DNA from: Penicillus capitatus | Lineage: Eukaryota > Plantae > Chlorophyta | Direction of reading: 5' to 3' | DNA length: 64,000 nt | Assembly (NCBI GenBank): GCA_965649825.1 | Contig: OZ287697.1 | Span: forward strand, 645,635-709,634 | Part shown: piece after piece, positions 22,631 through 53,900 of the stretch | Layout: the number at the start of each line of letters is the position of its first letter | Numbering within the stretch: position 1 is the first letter of the stretch | Translations under genes and position numbers: made by a program | The notes under the pieces: generated by a model | The model's input: only the letters and a program-made list of their open reading frames with translations | The model's database searches: none | Told to the model about the DNA's origin: nothing

Positions 22631-23007
22631 TTTAATGGACCGATTCACAAATGGGAATAAGGTATATGAAATATCTCACTTCTCACACTTTCTCTATCAT
22701 TCCAGTGAATTCCACACGCGCTGTCGTGTTAAGGCGTAGCGCTCGCGATAATGCGCTCATCTACCTACACTTGTGTCGATCTCCAGGTGACAGGTCGTAG
22801 GTTCTCTATACCTTCCTATCCACAAATAGACCCGCGGCTCTACGTCACAGATTCCAAGTAGATTCCGGATCTTTGCAGAATATTCCTTTTTGTTACTAAA
22901 AATAAAGTACCCTATAAAAGCGTTGTAGATGTACAGAACTTGTCTTTCGTTTGTAAGACTTTACGTTTCACAGGTCTACGTGCGCCCACCTTTAAAATTG
23001 TTTCCAT

Positions 23008-23690
23008 CTAAAAACCTACGCGACAGCGCTCCACGTGACGCACGTAATCTGATAACCCATAAACAGGTGGCACAAAATGACAGCCTGGAAAGCAATAATG
23101 TTACCCTGGAAAGATGGATCGGACAGGTAGGTCTGGTCAGGACAAGAAATGTGTGACTGCCTGCGAAAAGAGTGACCAGAATCGTGACCTGGATCATTGC
23201 GGCGATGTCGGCATCGCGATCTGCTTCGTTGCGAGGTGGTTCCATATCTGTCACATGGGTAACGCCTTTTGCTTTGCCTTTTGACTGACAAGAATAACAC
23301 AACGTCGCCAAATTGTGTGAGATTATGTGTGAGAGTGATACCTCTAAGTACAGCTGAAAGTCACGACTGTCCGATGAGCCTTCGAACCGAAAGAGAAAGA
23401 ACCCCGAGGCCTCGAATGCAGATCATTCGACATTCTACTCAGTCGTCGTGTACTTGATAGAGGACAACGACGAGCGAACCGTCGGGCAACTGCCAGAGAT
23501 CGATGTCGTCACGGGCGATGTCCATAGATACAAGGCACTGCTCATCGATCTCAAGGACGATCGCGTTGTCTTTGGTCGTTTTGAGAAAGCCGCTGCCATC
23601 GCTCTTCATCAAGAACGCCTTCTTTTGATCAGCACCCTCCACGGCCATCGCAATAGATCCTGGCCAACGGTATTGCTCCTCGTCGCTCAT
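23008..23690 (-). CDS. Probable REC114/PHS1-like meiotic double-strand-break factor (about 160 aa, 4 introns)
   Basis: Manual splicing gives a beta-rich N-terminal region (RWPGSI..FFLFRFEGS) and C-terminal ADIAAMIQTYLSDPSFQDYVRHVER, resembling the REC114/PHS1 terminal helix motif. One acceptor is an atypical GAG. Confidence 0.55.
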
Positions 23691-37166: not shown

Positions 37167-37295
37167 TTTGTGCTGACGCGGAATGCAAAACGAACAAACA
37201 AACAACAAAAGAAGAACGAATGAACGCCGAAACACACGACAGAGTTGACCGCTTGGTGTTTACATTTGTAAACGCGTTTCATGAGAAAGTCACTG

Positions 37296-37845
37296 TCATG
37301 AATCATTCCGCTGACCCAGCGCGGTCAAGGCACCTGCGTTCGTCTGGGCATCCGGTCGGTACACACGAAAAGAGCCATAACCAACTAGGGCATTGTAGCC
37401 GATAGGCATGCATGTGGATAGCTGATTGCCAAGAGAAGCATTACGGACACCGTGCACGACTTGAATGGGATCAATCAGCCTTGGGAGGTGTAGAGTCAGC
37501 GGCTTTAGCCATGAGCCTTTCAGAATCTTCTTTTGTGAGACAGCCGGCGAACACGTGTGCTTCCTCTTTACAGTACTTAAGGGTCATCTGCCGAACGAAC
37601 CCGGTGTCGCAACAAGTTATGAGCAGTATACACTTCCGGACAACGTGCCATGGTACACTCGGAAAAACCGCTGCAATACGAACGTCGTCAGAATAACGCA
37701 CAACGTAAACAGAAGATACATGAAACACGTTGTGTCTCGCGTTCTTGTCGAACAAACACGCCCGACCTAACGCAAACGGTCTTACGGCCGGAGATCGAGC
37801 TGAGTATCGTTATCCCCCACTTCTGTACCGTGATGGTGACGGCGT
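37296..37845 (-). pseudogene. Internally deleted, frameshifted copy of the SDR gene at 42585-43553
   Basis: 37508-37845 aligns closely with 43312-43650. TGCDTGFG has become TCCDTGFV, with a frameshift just upstream. The core (about 42755-43305) is absent, and the remaining 3' part reads DPIQVVHGVRNA..IGYNAL. Confidence 0.9.
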
Positions 37846-37857
37846 GTCTTTGGAAGA

Positions 37858-39015
37858 CAAAGGGTTCGCGACCTCGAGAAACCAGAGTGCGGCCCGTCCT
37901 GCGGACCTGACCGGCGTGAAGCGACGTTTGACCCACTTCTGGCCGACGTCAGACTGTCGTGGACGGAATGGAGCGTTCTGATTGGCCGAGAGCAGTTCGA
38001 ATTGTTCCAGACGTCACCTCGGCTGCAAAACGGATATAAAATGCGCGACGCCGTACCCATTTCCACATTTCCTGTTTTGTCTTACTCTGCGCAGGTTTCC
38101 GAAGCGCATGCTTCAGGTACGGTCCGCCTGCATTATCGACGCTGAGCTGACTCGGCGTCGTAAACGCGCAGTTCTTTTCCGCAGGTGCGCGCCGAAGGAC
38201 AGGCCCCCCGAAGACTCCAACACTCAAAGGTTCGTCCGTTCGCGTTCTCTTGTGTGTCTGCCCACCTAGGTAAGGCCGCGACCACGTGGAATTTCTGCGG
38301 CGTCGACCGATGCCGCGTCGAGCGGCTTCGGCCCCTCGGCCGCGGCTAAAGCGGCGCTCGACGCGGCATCTGTCGATCGACACCGCGTCGAGCGGTCTAT
38401 GCCTCTCGGCCGCGGCTAAAGCGGCGCTCGACGCGGTGGCGATCAACGCCATCTCTCCTCTTACCCAGGTCTCTCGAAACCGGCTCCGGTTTCGAGATGC
38501 ACCTAATTTTTGTCTGCGGTCTATCCGCCAGATGGGCGCCGCGTGGCTGCACAGATCCTGTTCGGCCGCGCGACGCCCATCTGGGTGATACTCCAGGGCA
38601 AAAATCTTCTCTATTGGTTACCGACTTGTCTTTCTTTGCAGCCGATCCTTACAGAGTGCAATAGGTTAGCTACCACATCGCTTCCGGCTGTCTCCTGTAT
38701 AACATTCGCTCGTGGCAGCTGCAATACAGGAATGATCCCGCGAAGATATTCGCATCCTTCAGTGCCACAATCTGTGGACCGTATGAAGGCCGAGAGGCCT
38801 CGTCACCTTGCGGTTGTTCAGTGCTGTAAAGACCTGTCTCCTTCCGTGTGAAGACGACTGAGCAGTGATCCTGCCCAAGAAGAAGAGGTGATGGTCTAGG
38901 ATACTATTCTCTGTTAAGAGGGCAATGACAGGCGTGCCGTCGTTTCCACTTTACACAACTTCTGGCGAAACGGCATGGTTTTTAATCGCTGACAGCTGCA
39001 TCATCTAAGTTCTGT
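37858..39015 (+). repeat. Copy 1 of a 1.16-kb direct repeat rich in hairpins
   Basis: Colinear by eye with 44698-45856 (offset about 6840), with scattered substitutions and 1-nt indels. Confidence 0.95.
38303..38438. repeat. Tandem pair (70-bp period) of GC-rich inverted-repeat units
   Basis: ccgcgtcgagcg..cgctcgacgcgg occurs at 38313 and 38383. Stems are 38303-38324/38355-38376 and 38381-38394/38425-38438. Confidence 0.9.
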
Positions 39016-39953
39016 TCTGAGATTGCAACAATAAGAGAACAGCTTGTTTCAAGTGTTTTGTGAATAACTTCTGATAACAAACAAGAAACGATGATCGATA
39101 AATGCGATAAGTCGTTGTCGCATTGTGTGTTTGCGCGGTTTGGACAAAGAGTAAAGAGCGCGATGTGATGGAAAGTGCCGTCTTGTTTGGAAAACGTGAG
39201 GGTAAGCTCTACTCTGCAAGATTGCGAAATGTACGTGTATCGCAGAATATCCTTAACGTGGTAGAGGAGCAAGTACAACAAAACCTGTTGGACTGCCGTT
39301 GATAAAATTCCAAAAAAGAAAGACGACTATCCGCAATGTTTCAGCAGATAGTAGCCACCGTCAAAGAGTCTAACAACAAACCGACGGAAATGACAATGCC
39401 GTGAGCAGTAATAACATCTATTCTAGAAATTCACTCGCCGCCTCACGTTCAACGGTCGCTGTGGCGTTTGCAAAGCTCTATGGCAACTTCCTAATCAAGT
39501 GGCGTAAAGTCCGTACTAACTTCTTAATGGCAATACAAAGTGCCAAGTGCATTGCGGCCTTGTCAACTTCCAACTGAAGTTCTTAACGGCACGTGAAGTA
39601 TCAAGTGAAGTTCCTACCGAGTTCCTAGCGCCACTTCCATTTATGAATATTTGAACGGTCCCAATTCTTGTATGGACACATTGGCTTTAAACATCTATTG
39701 CGACGCATGTTACACCGAGTGTCCATTTGGCGACGTAATGGGGACCGTCATTCTAGCCTTTCACAGTCGGAACATACAAAAAATAGTAGAGTTTTGGGAT
39801 TATGTTTAGGACAACAGATACATGTTTTGTCACAACGGGATTGGTTTTTAAAGGGATTTTGTGTTTTCAAGACCGCTCGTTTAAGTACGGAGAGTGTTAT
39901 ATTACGTATTTGCCTGTAGAAGAGCAACCCTCACTGGCTTAGGTATTTCTAGC

Positions 39954-40826
39954 TACGTGTTGAATGGAAAACTGGGCCAGCTGAGAAAGGGACAGATCGA
40001 ATTCATGAAAAGCCTGCCATCCGGAGACTACATGATCCAGGTTGATTAGAACGATCTTGAATAGCTAAGAAAAAAACACTTCCCAGAAGCAGACTTTGAG
40101 ATTTGCGGAACATGGATACCAAAACCATCACATTTTGAAATAAGCATACCATCCGTTATGATTGAGGGGCAGATTAGTCGCTGACTTATCACGGAATCAT
40201 ACATGAAGTTAAGTTAAACGCAAAGATGTCTATTTACCCCGGACAAGAGACGGGAAAGCCTCTCTCACGTTTGTACGATTCCACCGAAAATCGAATCTTA
40301 GCAAAACTTAGGCCAATCGAGAATTGTCATGCCCTCACCGATTAAACGAGGATATCCTCCACCGACAAGGAATGTTCATTGGCACACTTCCAGTGTACGC
40401 ATGACGATTTGTTCATTACCACGCAATCCGAAACGCAACCCTCTGCCGCCACCCATCCATTTACGAAATCTTAGTTAAAAAGGAACTGAACCCCAAGACT
40501 GTTAAGGTATTAATCGAGATGTGCAAGGAGAAGAATGAGAAACGGAAACTGACGAACTCCACTTAGAGCACTCACTGGCAGCGTCAAAGTTTAGACGTGT
40601 GTATGAAAGAATTTCTTTGCTGAAAAGTTACTCCATCGAAACGCGGCCATACAGAAACTCCGACGATCCGACCGCGGAATCACAACGAGACCTTGTACAA
40701 CATGATGATTTGCGGTCACTTGCACGAGGGAAAGACGCTTTTTCCAAATTAGAAGAACAAACGTCACAGGACAGATTGTGGCTTCAAGAACCTGAAAGGA
40801 GACTGGAGAAAACACAACCATGTTAA
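39954..40826 (+). pseudogene. Decayed intronless reading frame of unknown origin
   Basis: Protein-like frame YVLNGKLGQLRKGQIEFMKSLPSGDYMIQVD*NDLE*LRKKHFPEADFEI is interrupted by TAG, TAG and TGA, then continues after frameshifts (EDILHRQGMFIGTLPVY, ELNPKTVKVLIEMC). Confidence 0.4.
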
Positions 40827-42584
40827 AACCAGGAACGCATGTTCGCGCTGTGTCGTGTTAACGAAGGTATAGAACCGCTGCTTTTTCCGTTATTGAATTA
40901 ACAAACAGCGTGAGGAATCACTTCATAATCTTACCGAGTCTTAAATCTAGTGAGCCATGCAAAAGCTAGTTCGGATGACATCACAAGTCGGTAAACAAAG
41001 AATATAATGTTAAGAGGCAGAGTCATACTCTATCAAGTAGAATTGCCCCGGTGGTTTTGGCATTTAGTTTCGTAAAATCGCATCGTCAAAAACAATTATC
41101 TGTACTACGTGTCTCCATTGTTAACAAGTTTCTGAAGGTATCGACTCTTGATCTTTTGAATTTGTTGACCATTTTATTACATGAAGTCTCTTATCAAAAA
41201 GCTTTCGAAAAACAAATCATTGGTTTTATCGACTAACGACATTTGCTTGGAAGGACTGATCGCTTCTGCGTAAACTGCAATGGCCGTCTTTACGAGATGC
41301 ATGTGCTCTTTCGGAGGTTTAGACAAAGTCCAATTTCCTCTGTGGATTTTGCGCCGAGTGCATCCACGGGCAATTATCGTTACAACTCATCGATTGTTGG
41401 CGGCTTCAAATTTATGGAACACTTCTGATGGATGAGATGGCTGTTTATTCCAAAGACTGGCTAGCTAGAATACCGATGATCGTCTAAGTTAGAGATCGAC
41501 ATGTTTTCGTTGTATTCGATCAGTTTTCCTTTATGGAGTGAAACGTGTAATTTCCAAATAGTCTTATGGAAAGAAAGCCTTGTGTAGTCATTTCGTAAAG
41601 GCTACAATGTTTGCGTATTTTGATAGAAAACAGAGCTGTTTGCACGCGACAAACACGGACAAAGGTAAGAGTGTATTCTGATCTAATTGTAATTGGATAT
41701 ACAAGGTGTTTTCTTGGTTAATATAACTCGAAAGGATTGCGTTGGATGGTTAATACAAGCAACTGCGGTACGTTCGACAAGTCTAGGGTAATATTCAAAC
41801 GTCGTGAAGCCCATCAGATTGTTCGCGATGACGCAATCGTCAAGCAATGACGATTTCTTTTATGACACTAGGACGACTCTGGGAGTTCGCAGAACACATA
41901 ACCAAGCCAAGTTCTGATTGGTTGGATGCATTGTGTTTTTGTGCAGTGCGAAACAACACTGCACTTTCTGTTGGTGACCTTTGCATGTTCAATTGCCGAT
42001 TACACCGGAGACTCGACTTTTGCAGAACAAACCGTTGGTTCCCTTCTCTCATCGACTCACAGTTTCTATTGTAGGTTACGACAGGCGAGCTGTTACCAAC
42101 TTTCGGTATCTGTAACGACACAAGACGGATGAATTTTCTACCTTTCCTGCGTCTGAAGGGTCCTCCCTCCAGTTTTCATCGTATCCACAAAGAGCGACGA
42201 TCTTCATACCCAGTTGAAAAGTTGAGATCACTCATTCTTCACCGCAGAGGCATGTGGATAGCAGCTTCATCAGAACGAAGTTTTCTGGTGGGGATTACTC
42301 ACGCAAAGGGGAACAACCGTGGAACGATGTTTCAGGACACGTCTCGAAGGTATTCTTTTCTGGGGACTGGGATGGAACTACGCCATGATATTATTAATTC
42401 TACAGCACGATACATGCAAACCCCTCATCTTCGACAGCGACACAATTAGATGTGAGAGGCTGTGCACTTGTCACCACAACAATTCCCGGATGCAGGTGCA
42501 GAGAATACATAGACATCGATGGAAACAGAACTAACTGTCAGTGACTATGTGTCATAGGGGCACCACTGTTACAGAAAATTAAAT

Positions 42585-43553
42585 TCATTGACTTATTCTG
42601 TTCAACACATCCACAAAAGATTCCGGTAAGAGAGAAAGATGCCAATAAAGCCACAAGGCGTCATAACCGATAAGAATGCGCGTGGCTGGATAACGGCAAA
42701 GAAGAGCATCACGAACACCGTGGACGACTCGAATGGGATCACCAGCCATGCGCCTATACTCCTTCGCTTTTTCTTCGTACGCAAAAGGATCTCTAGGGTA
42801 ACGTTTGCGGACATCGGATGTCGCTCTGTCGCATCTCTCTTTGACTGTTGGTCGACGCTCTTCGGAGTCCAAGATGGGTGTGTTGAAGAATCCAGGAATA
42901 ATCTTAATAACACGGATACCCGAGAAGGCTAATTCGCGCCTCAGACAAGTGAAGAATGCGTCCTGTGCGCTTTTGGAAGCAGAATAGGCGGAGAACATTG
43001 GAGCCGGTATGAGAGATGAGCAGCTCGTGATAGCAACGATTCTGCCTCCGGGCTGATCCATCAAGGGGAGGAACTTCTTGGTCACGCGCACGGACCCAAG
43101 GAAATTGATGTCCATCACTCTTTCGTACTCCGACATCTTCGTCATCTCGACATAAAACCCCGCAAAGATACCAGCGTTGTTGATGACGGCGTAGAGGCTC
43201 TTCTGTTCCTTCTCTAAGAACGTCTTGACGACGTTATAGGCGGCCTGGATCTGCGTTTCGTTAGTGACGTCCAGAGGGAGCGTCGTCACTCGTCCCTTTC
43301 CAGTGGCCTCGGCCATGAGCCTCTCAGAACCTTCTTTTGTGAGACAGCCGGCGAACACATGTGCTCCCTCTTCACAGTACCTGAGGGCCATCAGCCGACC
43401 GAACCCGGTGTCGCATCCAGTTATCAGCAGTGTCCTTCCGGACAACGTGCCATGGTACTTTCGGAGACACCGCTGCAATACGAACGTCGTCAGAATAACG
43501 CACAACGTAAACAGAAGATACATGAAACACGTTGTGTATCGCGTTCTTGTCAA
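42585..43553 (-). CDS. Intronless short-chain dehydrogenase/reductase, SDR9C (retinol/hydroxysteroid dehydrogenase)-like
   Basis: N-terminal TM segment, LLITGCDTGFG, LDVT, VINNAG, INFLG, YSASK, IIPGFF in one uninterrupted 322-codon ORF. Confidence 0.93.
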   Translation of the reverse strand: MTRTRYTTCFMYLLFTLCVILTTFVLQRCLRKYHGTLSGRTLLITGCDTGFGRLMALRYCEEGAHVFAGCLTKEGSERLMAEATGKGRVTTLPLDVTNETQIQAAYNVVKTFLEKEQKSLYAVINNAGIFAGFYVEMTKMSEYERVMDINFLGSVRVTKKFLPLMDQPGGRIVAITSCSSLIPAPMFSAYSASKSAQDAFFTCLRRELAFSGIRVIKIIPGFFNTPILDSEERRPTVKERCDRATSDVRKRYPRDPFAYEEKAKEYRRMAGDPIRVVHGVRDALLCRYPATRILIGYDALWLYWHLSLLPESFVDVLNRISQ

Positions 43554-44697
43554 ACAAACACACCCGCCCTAACGCGAACGATCTTACGGCCAGAGATCGA
43601 GATAAGTATCGTTATCCCACTTCTGTACCGTTGATGGTGACGTTGTGTTCAGAACAACAACCGCCAACCACACAGTTCCAGCCTCAAATGAAGAGATGTG
43701 GAAATTTCTTGTTACACCGGAGATGGACGAGGCAACATCAACCAGGTCTTTCATCTTGGCCTTCACCTTTATCGAGTCTGCTAAGAAAGACTGCTGCAAC
43801 TGTCAGATGTAAATGGATGGATACGTGTTAACTGTCAAGTAACTATTTCCTTCCAGAATTGACATAGTCCAGGAAGACAGCAGAATTGTGACGAAAACAA
43901 ATGTTCCTCTCTACACGCACGACAAATACGAAATACTATGCTGGTTGCTTTGGATCCAGTCTGCCCAGGATGAGAGCAAGGATCACTGCCAGCACCATTT
44001 TCATAAAGCATACGTCGTTTCCCATTCAGGCTCCCACCTCCCGTCTCCTTCGTATGCGTTGTCATTAAGATGGCGACCACTCTATTCACTAGATCTACAA
44101 GCCTTGAATTCCTTTTTCGAATGACCAAGTAGTCATTCACGACGGTGACGGCGCAGAGACTGTTGACAATCCTCCTGACGTTGGCCTAGGGCCCTCCTTT
44201 AAGCTGCAATGCTGTCTGTGTAAATTGCATGTAGCAGAAAAGAAGGGGGAATCGTTTGTAATTAGCAAAGCTGTTGGATAGGGAGTCGGATCCTTTTACT
44301 CGGTTTCCCGTCGCAGAAAATCTTGGTTTGTTGTTTCTTTCTCAGGAAACATTTTGCGGGTCCGTCGTGATCGGAAAATCTCCATTGGATCCTTATCTAC
44401 CTTCTCGCATTGAATGCAATCTGTTTGGCGTCCACGTCCAGTCCATGCTTCGCTGTGCAACATAAGGCAAAAAACCAGTTCAGGATGGATCTCTGTCGAG
44501 GTGTGCAGTTCGGGATTGTGTCCTTCGTTTCCTTGACTCGTCTTCGATCTGCGGAAAACCGCCGAATTCGCGAGCGCGTTTCATCTCGAGGCGCGTCAGC
44601 TGGTCGTCAACCTTCCACGGGGTCGATGAAAGGACGGTAAGACGCACGTTCGCTATCGCCATTATGCGGCAAGCTCTGCCTATATCACCCTGAAAGG

Positions 44698-45856
44698 CAA
44701 AGGGTTCACAACCTCGAGAAAACAGAGTGCGGCACGTCCTGCGGACCTGACCTGCGTGAAGCGACGTTTGACCCGCTTCTGGCCGACGTCAGACTGTCGT
44801 GGAGGGAATGGAGCGTTCTGATTGGCAGAGAGCGGAGTCGAATTGTTCCAGACGTCACCTCGGCTGCAAAACGGATATAAAATGCGCGACGCCGTACCCA
44901 TTTCCGCATTTCCTGTTTTGTTTTACTCTGCGCAGGTTTCCGAAGCGCATGCTTCAGGTACGGTCCGCCTGCATTATCGACGCTGAGCTGACTCGGCGTC
45001 GTAAACGCGCAGTTCTTTTCCGCAGGTGCGCGCCGAAGGACAGGTCCCCCGAAGACTCCAACACTCAAAGGTTCGTCCGTTCGCGTTCTCCTGTGTGTCT
45101 GCCCACCTAGGTACGGCCTCGACCACGTGGAATTTCTGCGGCGTCGACCGATGCCGCGTCGAGCGGTTTCGGCCCCTCGGCCGCGGCTAAAGCGGCGCTC
45201 GACGCGACGTCGGTCGATCGACACCGCGTCGAGCGGTCTATGCCCCTCGGCCGCGGCTAAAGCGGCGCTCGACGCGGTGGCGATCAAACGCCATCTCTCC
45301 TCTTACCCAGGTCTCTCGAAACCGGAGCCGGTTTCGAGATGCACCTAATTTTTGTCTGCGGTCTATCCGCCAGATGGGCGCCGCGCGGCTGCACAGATCC
45401 TGTTCGGCCGCGCGACGCCCATCTGGGTGATACTCCGGGACAAAAATCTTCTCTATTGGTTACCGACTTGTCTTTCTTTGCAGCCGATCCTTACAGAGTG
45501 CAATAGGTTCGCTACCACATCGCTTCCGCTGTCTCCTGTATAACATTCGCTCGTGTCAGCTGCAATACACGAACGATCCCGCGAAGATATTCGCATCCTT
45601 CAGTGCCACAATCTGTGGACCGTATGAAGGCCGAGAGGCCTCGTCACCTTGCGGTTGTTCAGTGCTGTAAAGACATGTCTCCTTCCGTGTGAAGGCGACT
45701 GAGCAGTGGTCCTGCCAAAAAACAAGAGGTGACGGTCCAGGACAGTGTTCTCTGTTAAGAGGGCAATGACAGGCGTGCCGTCGTTTCCACTTTACACAAC
45801 TTCTGGCGAAACGGCATGGTTTTCCATCGCTGACAGCTGCATCATCTAAGTTCTGT
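44698..45856 (+). repeat. Copy 2 of the 1.16-kb hairpin-rich direct repeat
   Basis: Colinear with 37858-39015. All hairpins are retained. Confidence 0.95.
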
Positions 45857-46320
45857 CCCCGAGAGTGCACGACGGAGATTCGATCGTCCAGACAATCGGA
45901 CGACCTCCACTCGGCTATCAGACAGACTGCGTTTGTACAATGCCCAGATCGGGGCCTACAGGGTGCCTGGCTGCACTGTCAACATACATTCTCTCCCATG
46001 AAACGATACTCCGCTCATAATCTCACGAGACCTGATCGCAGACCGCCTTGAAAGCTACCAGAGTGGCGGTGCTTTCCCGTTTTGCTGTTGCACTCTATCG
46101 TCTCTTTGGTAGCACCGATCTGAAACCGAGAGGGATGAGAATCGGGTAGAGCATCCGACAGCTGTTCGAGAGACGCGTACCGACATGTTCTGTACGCTGT
46201 GTCACCTTCCAAAAGCTCTTTTACAAATTTTGTCATTCTTGCACAGATGGGTCCATCCATTTCTATCAACGTCGTCGCCGCCGCTCTCCGCAGCGTTGTC
46301 TGAGCGATCGTTGTGGTACA

Positions 46321-47231
46321 ATGGGTGCGTAGCTCTTCCTTTAGGGCATCGCGTGTAGCTGCTTTATGGCCCATTTTCGTTCTAGGCATCACACGCGGGA
46401 CACTGCACAAACGCAAAGCGACGGGAGGCCGCAAGAAAGCGTGGAGAAAGAAAAAGAAGTAACGCTGATTCGGCATCCTTCCTTCGAACTGCCAGATCGC
46501 TGCCTCCAGATACGACATGGGACGACCTTCCGCCAGCACGAAGCTCTCCTCCAACGTCGAGGTGCGCCGCGTTCGAGCACGCGGAAGACTGATCAAACGC
46601 AGAGCCCTTCGCCTCGACTCCGGCTGCTTTGCCTGGCCCTCGGAGGTCACATCATCTCACATCCTCACATCTCCCTTCCATCGGTCGACCCGTGCAGGCA
46701 TGCACCAGGAAGACACGCATCATGGATGTTGTCTATCATCCCAACAGTAATGAACTGGTGAGCGCGGGCAGATCAAGAAGGGCGAAAACCGTGAGCGGCA
46801 GGTGCGGACGAAATCTCTGACGAAGTCTGTGGTGGTCCAAGTGGATGCCAATCCCTTCAAACAGTGGTACCAAAAGCATTACGGCGTGGAAGTTGGCGTG
46901 AAGGGCAAAGACGATGGGACGTCCGAAAACCTGCCAAACTTTGAAAGCATGAAAGACGTGCCGATGCTCCACATCCGTCCACGAGGACGCGAACTCTGTC
47001 GTTTGCTAGGTTTCGGAAGAGCAGATCAAAGAGATGAAAAGCCATCTGGCAGCGAGGAGGGCACTGGATGCGCGAGTGGCCGAGCAAATGATCACCGGTC
47101 GCTTGATGGCAATCGTCGCATCGCGCCCTGGTCAGATAGGAAGAGCGGATGGATACGTCCTGGAAGGCAAAGAGCTCGAGTTCTACATCAAGAAGTCCGC
47201 CAAGAAGAAGGGAAAGGCAGCAGCCGAATGA
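46321..47231 (+). CDS. RPS8: 40S ribosomal protein S8 (eS8), divergent, 5 introns
   Basis: ATG G|..[67 protein letters not shown]. Confidence 0.93.
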
Positions 47232-47290
47232 CAGAAACGCTGTACGATGCTTCTGTTTAAAACGGAGGCGCCTCCACGGCCCACTGCCCC

Positions 47291-48430
47291 TCAGAACGCT
47301 CGGAATGCGTTCTCCGCTTCTTCAGCGTCCAACGGCTCTCCCGTTTCCGACGTGGATTCCTTGTAGCTGTCGAAGTAGCTTGTGTCGTTGGCCGTCTTGA
47401 TCTTCGGAACAATCGGAGCACGCATCGTCCCTGCACCCCATCGACCTCTGTCCACACTGTCCTCCCCTGACGTATCCCTCACCGTTGGCAAGCGCGTTCC
47501 AGTCGAAGCCCTTGAAGAATCGGTGCTTCTTGATGTCGTCCACGCCGTTGTACAGGTTTCCGATGCGTTTGCTCTGATCTCCGTTGAGCAGCTTTCTTAT
47601 CAAGTCCTGAAGACACCCGTCGTCGACGTGTGCCCACGTCTGTGATGTCTGTGTGCCTTGGCCCACGGATCCATCGCTTTTGGATAGACGACGCGGCCGT
47701 CGAGGATCTGTTGGTAGACCACAAAAGGATTGTCGTCGCTGAAAGGAGGATAGCCCTCGAGCAGCTCGTAGAAGAGCACACCGAGACTCCAGAAATCCAC
47801 AGCGACGCCATGACCGCGACTCTGAATCACTTCCGGCGCCAAGTACTCGGGAGTCCCGCACAGCGTCCACGTTCTACGGGGAATAATGCGAGGATCTTCG
47901 ACAGCATCGCCACAGCGTGTGACACACCTCTCGCTCACTTTCTTCGCAAACCCGAAATCTGTCAGCTTAGCATAGCCGTTCTTGTCCAGCATTACGTTTT
48001 CAGGTTTGAGATCTCAATAGGCCACGTTGTGTGCGTGCAGTTCTTCCAGGATCAACGTCAGGCAGGCGATGTAGAAACGCACGATCGCCACCGAAAAGCG
48101 TCCAGCGCGTTGCAAATGAAAAAAGAGCTCGCCGCCAGGCACATACTCGAGAACCATGTAGATATGCGACCTGTCCTGGAACGCTCCAGCCCTGCACACA
48201 TGTTGCGTCGCCGCTGAGAATGCGAATGGGAGACAGACAGATTGGCAATGCGTGGATGCTGGATGTCCTGCAGAACAGCCCTTTCGCTGAGGATATGCTC
48301 CACTTGTTTGCGCTTGAGCAGAAGCGATTTCTTCATGATTTTCAAGGCAAAGAATTGCCCATCGCGTTTGTCTCTCACAAGCCGGACACGCACACAAGAA
48401 TCTATGAATAGAGCAACTGCTTTTACACTA
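47291..48430 (-). pseudogene. PKA/PRKX-like kinase with an in-frame TGA in the YRD motif and no intact Gly-loop
   Basis: FALK, EYVPGGELF, AY*DLKPEN (TGA at 48014-48016), [36 protein letters not shown]. Confidence 0.85.
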
Positions 48431-48830
48431 ATGGTGTCTATAAACAAAATGTCGACTTTCTCTGAATAGATGGGATGTTTCAGATTAGGGATCGTCGTCT
48501 GAGTTCCTTCGCACAACTTTCACAGACACGCTTGTGTGACCTGGCGAAGCAGAACAGTCTCGCCCAGAGAGTGAGCGTTTTAACAAAAGAGATCCGCACG
48601 CTGATTTGTGAAGATATACTGAAGTTTGAGGAGCAGAAAGACAAAAAGCACAGTTGCCAATGCCTTCCGACTCTCCCGCCTCAGCCGCAGACGGTTGAGA
48701 ACACTTCTTTTGCTCTTTTGACTCCTCCTCTTCACTCGCAGAGGATGAGTGCGAATATCTTCGCTGCCTTTGGCGATTCTGTCCTCGCGAACCGCGATGA
48801 TGCTCTTGTTTATCGGACATCCTTGACATA
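48430..48830 (-). pseudogene. Broken C3HC4-type RING domain, paralogous to the RING at 61692-61930
   Basis: CAFCLSAPQTSVYLH|SHKRVCESCAKEL against CVICLSAPQTSGFVH|SHRCVCEDCARRL, with the same phase-2 intron. A frameshift follows, and the last CxxC reads HPIY. Confidence 0.7.
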
Positions 48831-49532
48831 ACGGTCCAAGCAATCACACACACCGTCATGGCTGGTAGCCATAAAGGAACTGGCGACGAGAAAGAGAATG
48901 GGAACATGAAGGATCGAGACGGTTGCACACGGAAATTCGATAACGTTCCAATATTGCTTTCCGGTAAGAGTCTATGAAAAGACAGGGTGTTTGAGTATGC
49001 TGCCTCGAAGAATCCTCGAAACAACCAAACGAAAGAGGGCGACAACGGCTTCCGAGGTTTCTGGCGTTGTACTTAAGAACCCTCGGACAGTCTGTCAATG
49101 TCACTCACGTCAGGCGTCCTATCCACACCGTCGTCGTCGACGACAACGATGTGACGATGAATCCGGAGGGCCTTCGTCTCAGAACCTCGGCATCGATGTC
49201 AAACAGACGTTTTCATATTTGGATATTGGTGTCGCAGCGAGGTTGTCAGCCAGGTATCCCGCGTAGATTTTTGAGAATGGCAACAAATCACCAAGGTCGA
49301 AAACTGACGCCGTTCAACAGATCTCCACTTCATCCGCCAACTAAACTCCGTCGACATGCGATTCTCTTTTGTACATAAGACTGTTGCCGGATCGCTGTGA
49401 GAGAGGACAGAGTGCGGCTAAGCAAAACGTCTTCCAAAGACAACGAGTATAATGCTTCACATCCGCAATTGCTAACGATCTGTGTTGTTGATCCTCACAA
49501 TGTTCGTTGTCCTTCTCGCGACGCGAGAGATA

Positions 49533-49720
49533 TGGAGAAGACTTCGTACGACTTACACAAAATCCCATCGCCTCCCGAGAACTGGCTCTTCGGTCACACC
49601 TTGAAATTCGTGTATGGGAACGCAGCAAACCAAATTTCTCAGTGGGCGCGAAAACAACATGAATAACTCGGCCAATCCAAAATCATGAACATGCGAATTC
49701 TTCATAAACGCTTTCAGATC
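49533..49720 (+). pseudogene. Cytochrome P450 N-terminal fragment
   Basis: IPSPPENWLFGHTLKF..ISQWARKQHE*LGQSKIMNMRIL resembles the Pro-rich hinge/A-helix region. It has an in-frame TAA, and no downstream P450 motifs were seen. Confidence 0.45.
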
Positions 49721-50924
49721 TGTCTTCATGCGACGCCGCTCTTGTTGGCCATGGATGAAGCCATCAGCAAAGAGAGCATGAGAATCGCTCACATACATAC
49801 TCGCAGTGACTTTTTATCGTATGGCGATAATGGACACCGTGCTTGCGGGATACAGAATTCCGAAAGGGACCCTTGTCTTCACGCCTGGCAATCATACCTT
49901 CGCTGTCAAAGAGGATTGGGGCGATCCAGACGTTCTCCGTCCAGAAAGATAACTTACGGGAGGGGACATGTCGGTTAAGTACAATCTGGGTTTTCTCATA
50001 GGTCCAAGGGACTACCGGACAGCGATTGTCGATTTGTTGAATGAATATCGCCCAGGCCTGAGTCAAAGAGAGATCTCACTCTTCATGCAGCGAAATTTTC
50101 GTCGGACAGGCTAGACAGCTATTTTCTGCCTTTGTTTCTCAGACGGTGGCGTTGATTGTACAGAGTTTCGTCTTTTTGTAACGGTGAAGTGGGAATCGTC
50201 ATCTTGCAATCTCTACGCGATTCCGAAGGCCACACGCCCGTGGTGCGAGCGCCGTGGAAGAGCAACATGTTTAGCTCTAGTGCGTAACTGACACCTACCT
50301 CCATCCACCATCTAGCTGGCTTCCCCTTCGAGTATCCGCACTCGATTTTTTCCTTCAGTTGCCATGAACACCGGACAAGTAAGACACCGCCACCAGGTAG
50401 ATCATTATGCACCTCTGGCTTTTTCGCAATTTCCCTCGACGCGTCGTTGACGTCATCAGAGGGTAATCCGCCAGCGTCATTACCGATGGGTTGGAGTTTC
50501 CTCATCGTTTCCGTTCAGTCAAAACTCCCAGGTCGCCACGCGTCCCCCGCGTGAAAACTTTTGTTCTACTCTGTTAGCGACGTAACGCCACTGACGCCTT
50601 CTGTTTTTTCGCGCTGAACATCCCAAAGCTTGTTGAAAAAGAAGCCGCTTTTCCTGTCGATTCAACACTGAGTTGTACTCGTCGTACCGTGTAAGATGTG
50701 CTTCTCGAAGAAGGATATCCATAACTTCTCTATTCCGCTGCTTCTCCTCGCAGCGCTCGTCGTCTCCATTCGAGGGCAGAATATAGGTAAGCCACGCACT
50801 CATACACAACGCATTTTTCTTTCCTACAACGTCAACAGATAAATCGCTTGACGCTAAAATTCGTCCGCACGAAAAAAGAAAAACAAAATTCTTTGGCGCG
50901 TTTTTTGGCATTTCGACGTTGCTC

Positions 50925-53900
50925 ATGTTGGCCGTCTACGTCAAACGACCGTGTTGTGTAGATGGTGGTCGTTGCGTACTCTCTGATGCGGAGATCGAAG
51001 ATGTCTTCAACGAAGAGAAAACGACGTGGATGATCACAGACAGACTCTACCAACAGCACGGAATTCAGGAGATCCTCGACTGCGCGGCAGACAACGACGT
51101 CATTTCGCTGAACCTAACAAAGACCGTCGCCCCTACCGAGAGAATCGTCGTTCGCCGCAACGTAACGATCGACGGAACGCCGCCGTCTGATGCGAATCCC
51201 TCAAGGGCACAAACAAAATTTACGTGTCCATCGGGCAAGGGACTTTTTCTCGTAAGGTACGCATAGCATCTCACACATTTTTGTTGTCGTACAATTTTTT
51301 CTCACACTTTCCAGAGACTGTGACTTTGCATTGAAGAATGTTGTCATCCAAAACTGCAAGCACGCTAAGACGGATGGCGTTGCCAGCATCATCGAAACCG
51401 CCAGGTGCTCGCACAAGTCTTCTCAGGAACGCGAACTGCGTCTATTCAATGTGACATTCAAACGGAATGAGAATCTTGGAGGCTCAGTGGGACTCGTCGT
51501 GCACGATCCTGCGTGTCATGTCCGTCTTTTCATGCGCGACGTTCTTTTTCACGGCAATGGATATCGACGTGCATCGCGTCTAGCGAGAGAGAATATTCTT
51601 GAGAACGTGGTCGTGAAAGAAAATGAAGGCCCCAAAATCAGAAACCGAAATCGTCCTTTCTTTTTCTTCCCTCGGAAATTCATTGCAAATCTGACAGATC
51701 TCGTCGTGGCGGACAACCGAAGGACGGCTTTTGTTACGGCGTACGACGGACAGTTAGAGATCGCGGATTCTAAGTTCATCGGCAATTCGGGGAACAACAT
51801 CGGCGTCGTTTTCGCCTTTTCGACTCGACTGACCGTAAAGAACTCTCAGTTCATCCGCAATGACTGTCAAGGCAGTGGGGCTGCCATTCTAGTATACAAA
51901 GGCTCTACAGCCGCTTTTTCCTTTTGTGAGTTTTTGGAGAATAATTCGACGGAGATCGGAGGCAGTGTGTACATTAAGCAAGTGCGAAGCGTTTTGTTCG
52001 AATCTTGCCGTTTTGTGCGAAACACTGCTGCTCATGATGTTGACACCGATGAATTTGTTCCTCTTGGCCAAGGGGGAGCCGTCTTCTATCAGGGCCACTT
52101 CTACCGAATAGACAGATTCGATGTATACACGAGCAAGATAGTGTTCAAGAAGTGTGATTTCATTCAGAATCGAGCTTATGGAGGGAGTGCTGTTTATTTT
52201 ATACACGTCGGCGGAAAAATTCTGTTTCGTTCGTGTATTATTCGCGAGAATGAAGAGCTCTTTCATCATAAAGTGCTATATAAGGATGTCGGTGGGGTAG
52301 TTCAAGTTTTTGCGAGCCGTATCTCAACCTTTCGAATGAGGCAGTCTGTCGTCGAGCGGAACAGCGGAGTCCGGGGAGGCGGTGTGTCCATCATCGGCGC
52401 ACCGGGCAAACTGTATTTTGAGAAGACTATTTTCCGCAAGAATCGTGCACTGCGTGAAGCTGGAGGAGGGGTATTCGTCAGGGCGATCATAAATCACGAT
52501 GAACCAACATCCTTGAAGATTCGTCAGTCTGTCTTCCGAGAAAATGAAGGAAGTACACTGGGAGGTTCTGTTTACGCCTCGGGAAAGCGCATAGAGGCGG
52601 AACTCTACAACTGTACCTTTGCAAACAATTCAGCAGTGAAGGGGGCGGCCGTGCTTGCAGATGCTGTCGACGCACTGGTTATCACAGATTGTATCTTTAG
52701 AGGTAATGGCGCCGCGATCAGTGGCGGCGCCATTGCGGCCGAGGCTGTGGTCACTAAGGTGTTCGAGAGTACTTTTATCGAGAACAAGAGTCAGTATGGT
52801 GGTGCCATTGCTGCGTTTTCCGGCCTTCTGATTTCCAGATCTGCCTTCCGCGGAAATGAAGCAGGCGCTAGTGGGGGAGCTTTGCATGTCAACTATCGGT
52901 ACTACGATCCCATCGACGAAGTGGGCAGTTACAGTTATATTGGACTCTTTAAGAGTACATTCGTCAACAATCGTGCAGATGGTTCTGGAGGCGCTGTCCA
53001 CAACATCATGAACGTCGATTTGAAGACAGGAGACTGTATATTCAAGCGAAACAGAGCAAGCGTTGGTGGAGGTCTGTCGATTCTGCATGGACCGAAAAGA
53101 CAGTGGAAGCATGTCGTCAAACGCAGTAAGTTTTTTGAGAATCGCGCTCTGATCGGAGGTAAGAAAGAAGAGAATACGGTGTATTGGTGATGGAGTGTTG
53201 TTCGTAGGCGCCATCTCGTTGATCGATGCCTCGGCCTATTCCTTCCCTCCTGACCGTGAGCCGTACATTGGTCGTTACAATTTTCGGTATGACGCGAAGC
53301 GCAATTTCAGCTTGACGCACACAGAAGGCGGTTTTCGATTTCGAAAAAGTGTGATTGAGAGGAATACAGCCGAACGCTCCGGTGGAGGCATCTACTGCGA
53401 AGACATCACACTTTTGAAGATCGACGATCAGCCCATGAAACATTTTAGGCAACAAAATGTCGAGTGCCCAAACACTGTCGCCATTCCGTCCGTCGATATG
53501 GAGAACATTCGAAACAATACGGTGCGAAAGAGCGCGAGCGAGAGTCACGAAGAAAATCTGTCAACTATATCGAGCAGCTTCTGCGTGACAGTTCTCGAGA
53601 ATGATCAGCCCATTGCGTCGATTCGTCACGGAGGCGTGTATCGCATTGAGCAGTGGAAAAGTGGAGAGATCTTTCCCGTTCTCCGCGTAACGATGCATGA
53701 CAGTTTGGGAAACAACTTTTCTCAGACGAAGCCACCACAGCCGCTGACAGGATCACAAATCAGTGAGCCGCAGAACGCCTACGGAAATGTTGCAAGCGCC
53801 ATGCTGCGATCAAAACGTGATGCGTCCTTTCCGCACAGCTTTCTGACGAATGATGTTTCGGCAGACCTGTCCTCAGGCGTCGCCGTGATAGAGCCTGGTC

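Follow-up and report, generated by a model that had tools for sequence, protein, structure and literature searches.

A segment of 10-13 kb within the window, that is, the whole stretch of 64,000 nucleotides analyzed here, is a true island of gene copies that appear dead from their sequence lesions, in a compact algal chromosome. They were produced when sequence was copied locally between a pair of dehydrogenase genes and when a rearrangement beheaded a kinase gene; the island is a case of ordinary genome decay. An earlier note on this DNA had described an island of fragments, duplication and decay inside a compact chromosome; that core reading holds, and the note's overall interpretation is partly supported. 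The contrast in gene density is real, with approximately one Pfam-supported gene per 1.7 kb in the flanks versus two functional genes in the 9.9 kb spanning 37.4-47.3 kb, and the non-coding parts of the island diverge from a sister species (species B, syntenic at the locus) at the same rate as pseudogene and intron sites. The comparison also included two contigs from an ENA metagenome assembly, one of 6 kb (L001) and one of 1.46 Mb (L002), the latter representing a second haplotype (H2). L001 is 100% identical to positions 38652-44717 of the window over 6,066 bp, and L002 is collinear with the window over 20.8 kb, spanning the whole region. Mis-assembly, a concern raised in the earlier note, was assessed using these independent contigs and the synteny with species B and was ruled out, because L001 and L002 agree with the window. 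A structure created by collapsed or chimeric haplotypes is exceedingly improbable. Mis-joins do classically arise from repeats such as the 1.18-kb pair described below and from samples containing two haplotypes, and the 6-kb contig, which belongs to the minor haplotype, terminates within both repeats. The structure is nevertheless reproduced by both contigs: L001 is identical, and L002 (H2), although 2-8% different, stays collinear across the two repeats, the kinase junction and the P450 relic; the backbone of the structure is common to the window and the sister species, and the contig names suggest a long-read metagenome assembler.

In agreement with the earlier note, only two genes of the island, SDR and RPS8, were confirmed as intact. 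The short-chain dehydrogenase gene SDR (43523-42585, minus strand, 312 aa; Pfam adh_short, E 3e-42) presents both the TGxxxGxG and YxxxK motifs, is retinol-DH / 17-beta-HSD-like (SDR9C-type) according to its matches, and shows a dN/dS of 0.36 against species B. RPS8 (eS8; 46321-47231, plus strand) comprises six exons separated by GT-AG introns some 45-60 nt long, ends with a TGA stop, matches plant eS8 with E 3e-76 and has a dN/dS of 0.03 against species B. A further decayed ORF, which the earlier note had listed without coordinates, was not confirmed. One candidate, on the minus strand at 46015-46650, was rejected as a gene remnant, as it lies antisense to the RPS8 exons, and the others, ORFs of 167/193 aa within the 1.18-kb repeats, had no Pfam match and no homologue outside this organism, the repeat ORF forming a single-member cluster, from one contig, among 15 billion proteins.

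The deleted SDR copy reported earlier was recovered as an internally deleted pseudogene (37357-37722, minus strand), disrupted by a 2-bp insertion that shifts the frame and by stops. Its 3' piece (37357-37483) aligns with SDR positions 42624-42750 and its 5' piece (37508-37722) with positions 43312-43523, the missing segment of approximately 560 bp including the catalytic YxxxK. The same deleted copy is carried by species B, and the pseudogene predates the species split. In species B, homology between pseudogene and gene ends at the ATG; in the window, the pseudogene adjoins a copy (37723-37841) of the 119 bp of SDR upstream flank next to the start codon (donor 43524-43642), and the combined segment 37508-37841 is 90.4% identical to 43312-43642. 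Over the SDR 5' segment, the distance between the window pseudogene and the window SDR is 9.0%, versus 26.8% between the window and species-B pseudogenes and 10.7% between the two SDR genes. Hence, the window pseudogene was re-copied or converted after speciation.

A 1.16-kb duplication described in the earlier note was likewise found, as direct repeats of 1.18 kb with 1181 bp aligned at 95.6% identity. Copy A (37851-39027) is specific to the window lineage, and copy B (44691-45869), which occupies the ancestral position, is partly alignable with species B. Two 70-nt hairpin units are located at 45143-45276 in copy B and at 38302-38436 in copy A. The left junction of copy A consists of approximately 10 nt of filler after the upstream-flank piece and skips 1,048 bp of the donor, part of a unique spacer upstream of SDR (43524-44690) that is 66-73% identical to species B; on the right side, clear homology runs out near 39016. 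At the place of copy A, species B has about 3.6 kb harboring an intact P450 (384-aa ORF, Pfam E 1e-62). Donor order and strand are preserved, with 37508-37841 corresponding to 43312-43642 and 37851-39027 to 44691-45869, as befits duplication or ectopic conversion, and the SDR locus, 5.8 kb away, is the source of both the SDR fragment and the 1.18-kb copy. When the four repeat copies, two from each haplotype, are compared, every one of the three possible two-by-two partitions is supported by sites (11, 10 and 9) that lie clustered in runs, which is a signature of gene conversion among the copies. Such mosaic sites, together with within-species paralogues that are closer to each other than between-species orthologues, conform to the pattern of duplication followed by ectopic conversion. 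Copy A differs from copy B by 4.1% and from its own H2 allele by 5.5%, and conversion therefore blurs the date of the duplication. The island thereby resembles known systems of segmental duplication and non-allelic gene conversion (birth-and-death of tandem families) in its neighbor-derived direct repeats, its mosaic sites, a pseudogene that resembles its in-species paralogue more than its orthologue, and the internal deletion of one copy. In contrast to those systems, the tracts are tiny (0.3-1.2 kb) and the genome compact, one tract ran past the homology into a neighboring P450, overwriting it, and one junction resembles end joining rather than homologous resolution.

The kinase relic (47291-48391, minus strand) corresponds to a PKA-type catalytic subunit with five exons and intact GT-AG introns, but without exon 1 and the glycine loop; its PKA match (E 1e-95) starts at PKA residue 56, just past that loop. 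The nonsense hit noted earlier was verified as an in-frame stop at 48016-48014: the Arg codon of Y-R-D reads TGA in both haplotypes versus CGA in species B (CGA>TGA). As in a unitary pseudogene, the lesions have an intact counterpart, since species B retains both GTGSFA and CGA. The dN/dS against species B, however, is 0.10 (dS 0.38), far from the approach to 1 that relaxed selection would produce, and can be reconciled only with inactivation in the very recent past or with conversion templated by an intact copy elsewhere. Given this ratio and the intact splice sites, the apparently dead kinase would have died recently. Synteny with species B breaks off at 48391/48392, 16 nt into kinase exon 2, defining an evolutionary rearrangement breakpoint past which species B carries kinase exon 1, RPS13 (uS15), TTL and HAT1. 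Gene truncation at rearrangement breakpoints is known, e.g. from inversions in Drosophila or yeasts, and here too synteny stops inside an exon, unrelated sequence adjoins the break, and the kinase is otherwise well kept, so that it would be a young pseudogene. Unlike in those cases, the reciprocal product (the other half of the kinase with exon 1, RPS13, TTL and the N-terminal part of HAT1) was not found in approximately 85 kb of the window species. The rearrangement may have been an inversion, a translocation or a partial duplication, and the relic may accordingly be a partial copy of a kinase that is intact elsewhere.

Past the breakpoint, an orphan segment (48392-50900) with no counterpart in the species-B locus contains homologue-less ORFs and a P450 relic; between the window and H2 it shows zero substitutions and one 1-bp indel, at 48400. 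The relic, previously noted as a P450 scrap, is a pseudogene at 49547-50063 (plus strand; Pfam p450, E 5e-6) of which N-terminal and C-terminal pieces are left, with the heme Cys changed to Tyr, one stop and an internal deletion of about 0.85 kb. It shares 69% DNA identity with the species-B P450 and is therefore probably an older paralogue. The broken RING thought to be joined to the kinase could not be substantiated: the minus-strand ORF at 48488-49072 matches no RING family in Pfam at E<=0.05 and has zero relatives among 1.84 billion representatives. The truncation of the kinase at a breakpoint, the replacement of the P450 orthologue and the gene conversion between paralogues are all absent from the earlier note.

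Besides its decay, the island stands out for its allelic divergence. The window differs from H2, the 41x haplotype, at 3.2% of all sites in a sharp-edged block of 9.9 kb (37378-47283) versus approximately 0.25% elsewhere, and at 11/320 synonymous sites (3.4%) in island genes versus 11/3326 (0.33%) in flank genes (Fisher p 6e-7). This ten-fold synonymous excess in two functional genes is beyond relaxed constraint alone; the added factor may be balancing selection, deep coalescence by chance or a cold spot for recombination. It is not a local hot spot of mutation, since between-species dS in the island (0.33-0.52 vs 0.38) is not raised, and the even split of derived alleles between the window haplotype and H2 offers no indication that sequence introgressed from a species-B-like donor. 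Both results, together with the synonymous excess and the co-occurrence of the haplotypes in one sample (41x and 12x), would fit a balanced or anciently maintained polymorphism, e.g. on SDR or a regulatory element, to which the decay is incidental. We nonetheless consider this improbable: the haplotypes are collinear (largest indel, 11 bp) and identical in gene content, their amino-acid differences amount to two in SDR and zero in RPS8, a single deep-coalescing segment per genome may arise by chance when two haplotypes are sampled, and collapsed haplotypes in either assembly may lower the apparent divergence of the flanks. The sex-linked region envisaged in the earlier note is unlikely, because the haplotypes are collinear and lack any haplotype-specific gene. 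Known green-algal mating-type or sex-linked regions are similarly discrete blocks with allelic divergence far above that of their flanks, holding pseudogenes and duplications, but the present block is only about 10 kb long, is fully collinear, undergoes active gene conversion and contains no haplotype-specific or known mating-type gene. A haplotype-specific accessory segment, also proposed, is contradicted by the same structure in both haplotypes, with only small indels, and by the presence of the gene-poor layout and the SDR pseudogene in species B. Capture and movement of gene fragments by a mobile element (Pack-MULE- or Helitron-like) is very improbable. Fragments of three gene families do lie within 13 kb, and transposition does occur in this genome, as indicated by a MITE-like insertion polymorphism of 308 bp in another part of the window. 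Yet ORFs of at least 50 aa encode zero transposase or RT domains, no terminal inverted or long terminal repeats flank the copies, the MITE terminal motif is missing from the island, the repeat ORF has the one-member cluster mentioned above, and the copies come from the neighboring SDR locus and keep the order of the donor.

Low recombination in a centromere-proximal region, a further proposal of the earlier note, is compatible both with the sharp-edged block and with the AT-richer gene-poor tract that the note had pointed out. This tract (39028-42584, approximately 3.5 kb, GC 40-43%) is gene-free, its ORFs of at least 50 aa having no Pfam match, and contains the lowest 3-kb GC of the window (0.42 at 39001), about 3.4 sd below the mean of 0.495 (sd 0.022). 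Species B has a syntenic tract with 53-71% identity per 200 bp, in keeping with the neutral rate, and no conserved sub-blocks; the position is retained between the species, and the sequence drifts neutrally. Being free of genes and low in GC over a few kb (39.0-42.5 kb, GC 0.40-0.43), and lying about 0.515 Mb into a 1.458-Mb contig, the tract might be the small regional centromere of a chromosome of approximately 1.5 Mb, and the pseudogenes, duplications and uniformly divergent haplotype block would then follow from crossover suppression. Centromeres of Cyanidioschyzon merolae (2-3 kb, 48.4% vs a genome GC of 55%, without repeats) and of diatoms such as Phaeodactylum tricornutum are likewise short and lower in GC (10.1101/096016), and the tract shares with them its gene-free 3.5 kb, a GC dip of about 7-9 points, the lack of repeats, an unconserved sequence, a kept position and a chromosome-interior location. 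We regard this reading as rather unlikely, however. The dip is modest, with no 100-bp window below 30% and a tract GC well over the <33% that is reported to suffice in the diatom (10.1101/096016); gene conversion is active within the block; low recombination alone does not raise mean coalescence time; and the analysis covered approximately 85 kb of the 1.46-Mb contig. It is quite unlikely that the desert is a centromere with the 9.9-kb block as its crossover-free mini-pericentromere, in which haplotypes would persist about 10 times longer while conversion, duplication and pseudogenes accumulate.

Birth-and-death by ectopic recombination, in a small, weakly constrained neighborhood whose enzyme genes (SDR, P450) are dispensable, on a compact, intron-bearing chromosome and beside a lineage-specific rearrangement breakpoint, is favored here as a fairly probable account. 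Comparison with species B shows that, before the split, the locus ran from a cyclin gene through the deleted SDR copy, the P450, the low-GC desert, SDR and its long spacer to RPS8 and the PKA kinase. In the window lineage, a tract templated by the SDR locus replaced approximately 3.6 kb, including the P450, beside the SDR pseudogene; it comprises the SDR 5' coding end, the 119 bp of upstream flank and 1.17 kb from 1 kb further upstream. The filler at one junction and the abruptness of the right end suggest that a break was repaired by one-ended invasion where SDR homology was available and was then closed by non-homologous end joining. Afterwards, the 1.18-kb direct repeats and the SDR/pseudo-SDR pair have kept exchanging sequence via gene conversion. 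The rearrangement severed the kinase gene 16 nt after the start of exon 2, eliminating exon 1 and the ATP-binding glycine loop, and a CpG transition then turned the catalytic-loop Arg codon into TGA. The region presumably tolerates decay because selection acts on little of it and crossovers seldom occur.

On a small scale, the island cleanly illustrates gene death in a compact eukaryotic genome, with a P450 apparently overwritten by a paralogue-templated repair tract and a kinase beheaded, both datable by means of the sister species and the two haplotypes. It is worth following because three features coincide in 10 kb: a position-conserved, unconstrained desert, active paralogue conversion and a ten-fold deeper haplotype block. 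If the region is neither a centromere nor a cold spot, the finding is ordinary; if it is one of them, this coincidence would allow such regions to be located from sequence alone in metagenome-assembled, uncultured microalgae.

The structural history of the pseudogene-rich island at 37200-50900 is well supported as one of birth-and-death through ectopic recombination, together with a breakpoint. The surrounding window has the features of a compact eukaryotic genome: GC is ~49%, GT-AG introns are numerous and short (~45-60 nt), and the flanks of the island are gene-dense, with approximately one Pfam-supported gene per 1.7 kb and PsbP-domain genes in the neighbourhood. The window was compared with contigs from two assemblies. 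A 6,066-bp contig of ENA assembly ERZ25074695 (ctg220730_12x, L001) is 100% identical to window positions 38652-44717, and it starts and ends within the 1.18-kb direct repeats of the island (copy A, 37851-39027; copy B, 44691-45869). A 1.46-Mb contig of the same assembly (ctg340516_41x; pieces L002, L004, L005, L006 and L007) is collinear with the window over 3030-64000; this second haplotype or strain is hereafter called H2. The third comparator, ctg297313 of ERZ26696514 (L003), comes from a sister species, species B, with an SDR protein 78% identical to that of the window, dS values of ~0.33-0.52 and synteny spanning from the cyclin gene to the kinase. Taken together, these comparators rule out both mis-assembly, which the earlier note had named as a possible undoing of the island, and a haplotype-specific accessory segment, which it had offered as an explanation. 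A variant genetic code was likewise rejected as the source of the in-frame stops, since TGA, TAA and TAG all terminate long ORFs and the RPS8 stop is itself TGA. When codon usage was scored as log-odds after training on long ORFs, genuine genes could not be told apart from antisense ones, with a value of 0.087 for the ORF antisense to RPS8, and the score was therefore left unused. Exact-protein look-ups returned no match, probably owing to start-codon or allele differences; a tRNA search found none, and Rfam searches (gathering cut-off; E<=1) yielded sub-threshold hairpin matches only.

On the left side, the 5' exons of a cyclin gene on the minus strand reach ~37170, which places the left edge of the island at ~37.3 kb. 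Two pieces of the deleted SDR copy remain, 3' at 37357-37483 and 5' at 37508-37722, and the copy has acquired a 2-bp frameshift and stops and lost ~560 bp including the catalytic motif. The same deleted copy is found at the same position in species B and hence is older than the species split. The duplication, previously put at 1.16 kb, extends over 1,181 bp at 95.6% identity plus 335 bp at 90.4%, and is missing from species B, where an intact P450 (a 384-aa ORF with Pfam E 1e-62, together with an N-terminal exon) separates the SDR pseudogene from the desert, the low-GC gene-free tract that occupies 39028-42584 in the window. The copied tract of the window stands where species B has this P450-bearing segment. 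Homology between pseudogene and SDR stops at the ATG in species B; in the window it runs past the ATG, 119 bp into the SDR upstream flank, up to a junction with ~10 nt of filler at which 1,048 bp of the donor are skipped before a further 1.17 kb of homology. The right end of the copied tract is abrupt, near 39016, where the desert resumes. Such an arrangement probably arose when a break was repaired via invasion at the SDR homology, synthesis beyond the homology and end joining. Over the SDR 5' segment, pseudogene and SDR differ by 9.0% within the window and by 14.8% within species B, and across species the two SDRs differ by 10.7% and the two pseudogenes by 26.8%. These distances show a re-copying of the window pseudogene, or its conversion, from the paralogue after speciation. 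When copies A and B are compared across the window and H2, the informative sites of these four sequences form clustered runs of 11, 10 and 9 that back all three groupings, which indicates that A-B gene conversion has been recurrent.

On the right side, the kinase relic (47291-48391, minus strand) is of the PKA catalytic-subunit type (E 1e-95), with a match that starts at PKA residue 56, right after the glycine loop. It aligns with species B at ~87% across five exons until the alignment ends abruptly at 48391, 16 nt into exon 2; beyond this break, species B has GTGSFA, exon 1, RPS13 (uS15), TTL and HAT1. Kinase exon 1 with GTGSFA, RPS13 and TTL were not found within ~85 kb of the window species. 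The C-terminal acetyltransferase part of HAT1 was located at window positions 269-3 (minus strand), continuing left into L006 9629-9973, with 68% amino acid identity to species B. It is inverted relative to species B and lies 48 kb from the kinase (2 kb in species B), and the Hat1_N part was not found within the same ~85 kb. Given that Hat1_N, TTL and RPS13 were not recovered from this interval, HAT1 marks a second synteny break, which may be intragenic. A model in which one inversion produced both breaks, at the kinase and at HAT1, was discarded, as the neighbours that it predicts are absent from the ~85 kb. The reported nonsense hit in the kinase was confirmed, with the Arg codon of Y-R-D reading TGA in both the window and H2, and CGA in species B. 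GT-AG is kept in 4/4 introns, and dN/dS is 0.10 at a dS of 0.38. This low dN/dS and the intact splice sites suggest that purifying selection acted on the kinase throughout almost its entire divergence and that its death would be recent; alternatively, its similarity could be maintained by an intact copy elsewhere.

At the species-B locus, nothing corresponds to the orphan segment that follows the break on its right (48392-50900). The ORFs of this segment are orphan, matching only this organism's own ORFs when searched against a representative protein library. Neither this library nor Pfam lends support to the broken RING that had been described as joined to the kinase. The P450 scrap was recovered at 49547-50063 (plus strand) through Pfam (E 5e-6) and a tblastn match to the species-B P450, as a relic with a substituted heme Cys, one stop and ~0.85 kb lost internally. 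It is unlikely to be the relocated orthologue of the lost P450, since it differs from the species-B P450 by 31% at the DNA level and a decayed orthologue would be expected to differ by ~20%; it is probably an older paralogue. Directly right of the orphan segment, a 619-aa ORF (51331-53190, plus strand) is rich in Chlamydia-PMP-type repeats (PF02415, E 6e-14), and 10 haplotype differences are clustered in its 5' region, at 51069-51483.

Capture of fragments by a mobile element, also proposed for the island, was not borne out, with no transposase or RT and no bounding repeats around the copies. The concatenated ORFs (>=50 aa) matched no Pfam families, and hence no transposase or RT, and the repeat ORF is the one member of its cluster and comes from a single contig. 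Each 1.18-kb repeat contains two tandem 70-nt units (38302-38436 and 45143-45276), and each unit has a 12-nt inverted repeat (CCGCGTCGAGCG ... CGCTCGACGCGG) that makes a hairpin possible. These units are confined to the repeat copies of both haplotypes, are missing in species B and gave only sub-threshold miRNA-like matches in Rfam. Elsewhere in the window, a 308-bp low-GC insertion (22718-23025) missing from the 41x haplotype ends in 12-nt inverted repeats (GCGCTGTCGTGT / ACGCGACAGCGC) with TCCAC on each side, and looks like a MITE-type insertion polymorphism. The rest of the window, island included, lacks its terminal motif.

Two genes within the island were confirmed as intact. The SDR (43523-42585, minus strand) is uninterrupted in the window, H2 and species B, matches Pfam adh_short (E 3e-42) with both the TGxxxGxG and YxxxK motifs present, and has a dN/dS of 0.36 versus species B; its nearest named relatives are animal (metazoan) retinol-DH and 17-beta-HSD types. 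RPS8 (46321-47231, plus strand) was reconstructed from six exons, with a dN/dS of 0.03; its best PDB match is plant eS8 (E 3e-76; animals 1e-60), and its best named matches among 5.8 billion proteins are from Bryopsis (66%) and other chlorophytes (~60-62%). Together with the PsbP-domain genes, these matches suggest a microalga of the green lineage. An ORF at 46015-46650 (minus strand) was discarded as a gene, being simply the RPS8 antisense strand. The gene set is animal-like for a green-lineage alga, as seen in the SDR, the PKA-type catalytic subunit (47291-48391) and a nearby cNMP-binding kinase (L006 447-1811). Nowhere in the window does GC fall lower than in the AT-richer, gene-poor tract at 39.0-42.5 kb, and no Pfam domain was detected in desert ORFs of at least 50 aa. 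The desert retains just 53-71% identity to species B per 200 bp, with no conserved sub-blocks, and the spacer at 43.6-44.8 kb shows the same behaviour. With the SDR pseudogene at 73% and introns at 78% for comparison, the desert diverges at about their rate. The SDR-RPS8 spacer of species B holds a 2-kb stretch without window counterpart, a piece of which (L003 8287-8631) resembles a segment lying ~3.5 kb beyond the left end of the window (L006 6456-6647), at 72% DNA identity over 123 bp and 38% amino acid identity over 58 residues. The island of species B, too, may contain a gene fragment that originated at another locus.

Across ~52 kb beyond the island, divergence between the window and H2 is 0-1.6% per kb and ~0.25% overall, an underestimate if either assembly collapsed haplotypes there. 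These differences are clustered, an argument that the window carries a haplotype of its own in the flanks as well. Within 37378-47283, divergence is 3.2% (1.8% in unique parts, 6-8% in the repeats), with sharp edges. Relaxed constraint is rejected as the sole cause, because synonymous sites are elevated too, with differences at 11 of 320 sites in SDR and RPS8 versus 11 of 3,326 across the 17 coding segments compared in the flanks (p 6e-7). A local hot spot of mutation was rejected because between-species dS values are similar inside and outside the island, and introgression from a species-B-like donor because derived alleles are split almost evenly (69 vs 57). In an orphan and apparently non-coding stretch of 3.4 kb (47649-51068) that adjoins this most divergent block on the right, no substitution separates the haplotypes and the sole difference is a 1-bp indel at 48400, which fits recent common descent through a single origin or a sweep of the rearranged segment. 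For the deep haplotype block itself, balancing selection and chance deep coalescence are both possible. The build-up of junk, the absence of breaks in the deep haplotype block and the conservation of the desert would all be accounted for together if crossovers are rare in this region, which might then be a small regional centromere. Regional centromeres in C. merolae span 2-3 kb at 48.4% GC versus 55%, and small ones also occur in diatoms (10.1101/096016). We regard this reading as rather improbable. The inventory of the earlier note was largely right, in seven of its nine items, and the causes it proposed are mostly either wrong or still only candidates. The island is a fresh instance of known processes, and its stand-out feature is the deep haplotype block lying over a conserved desert.
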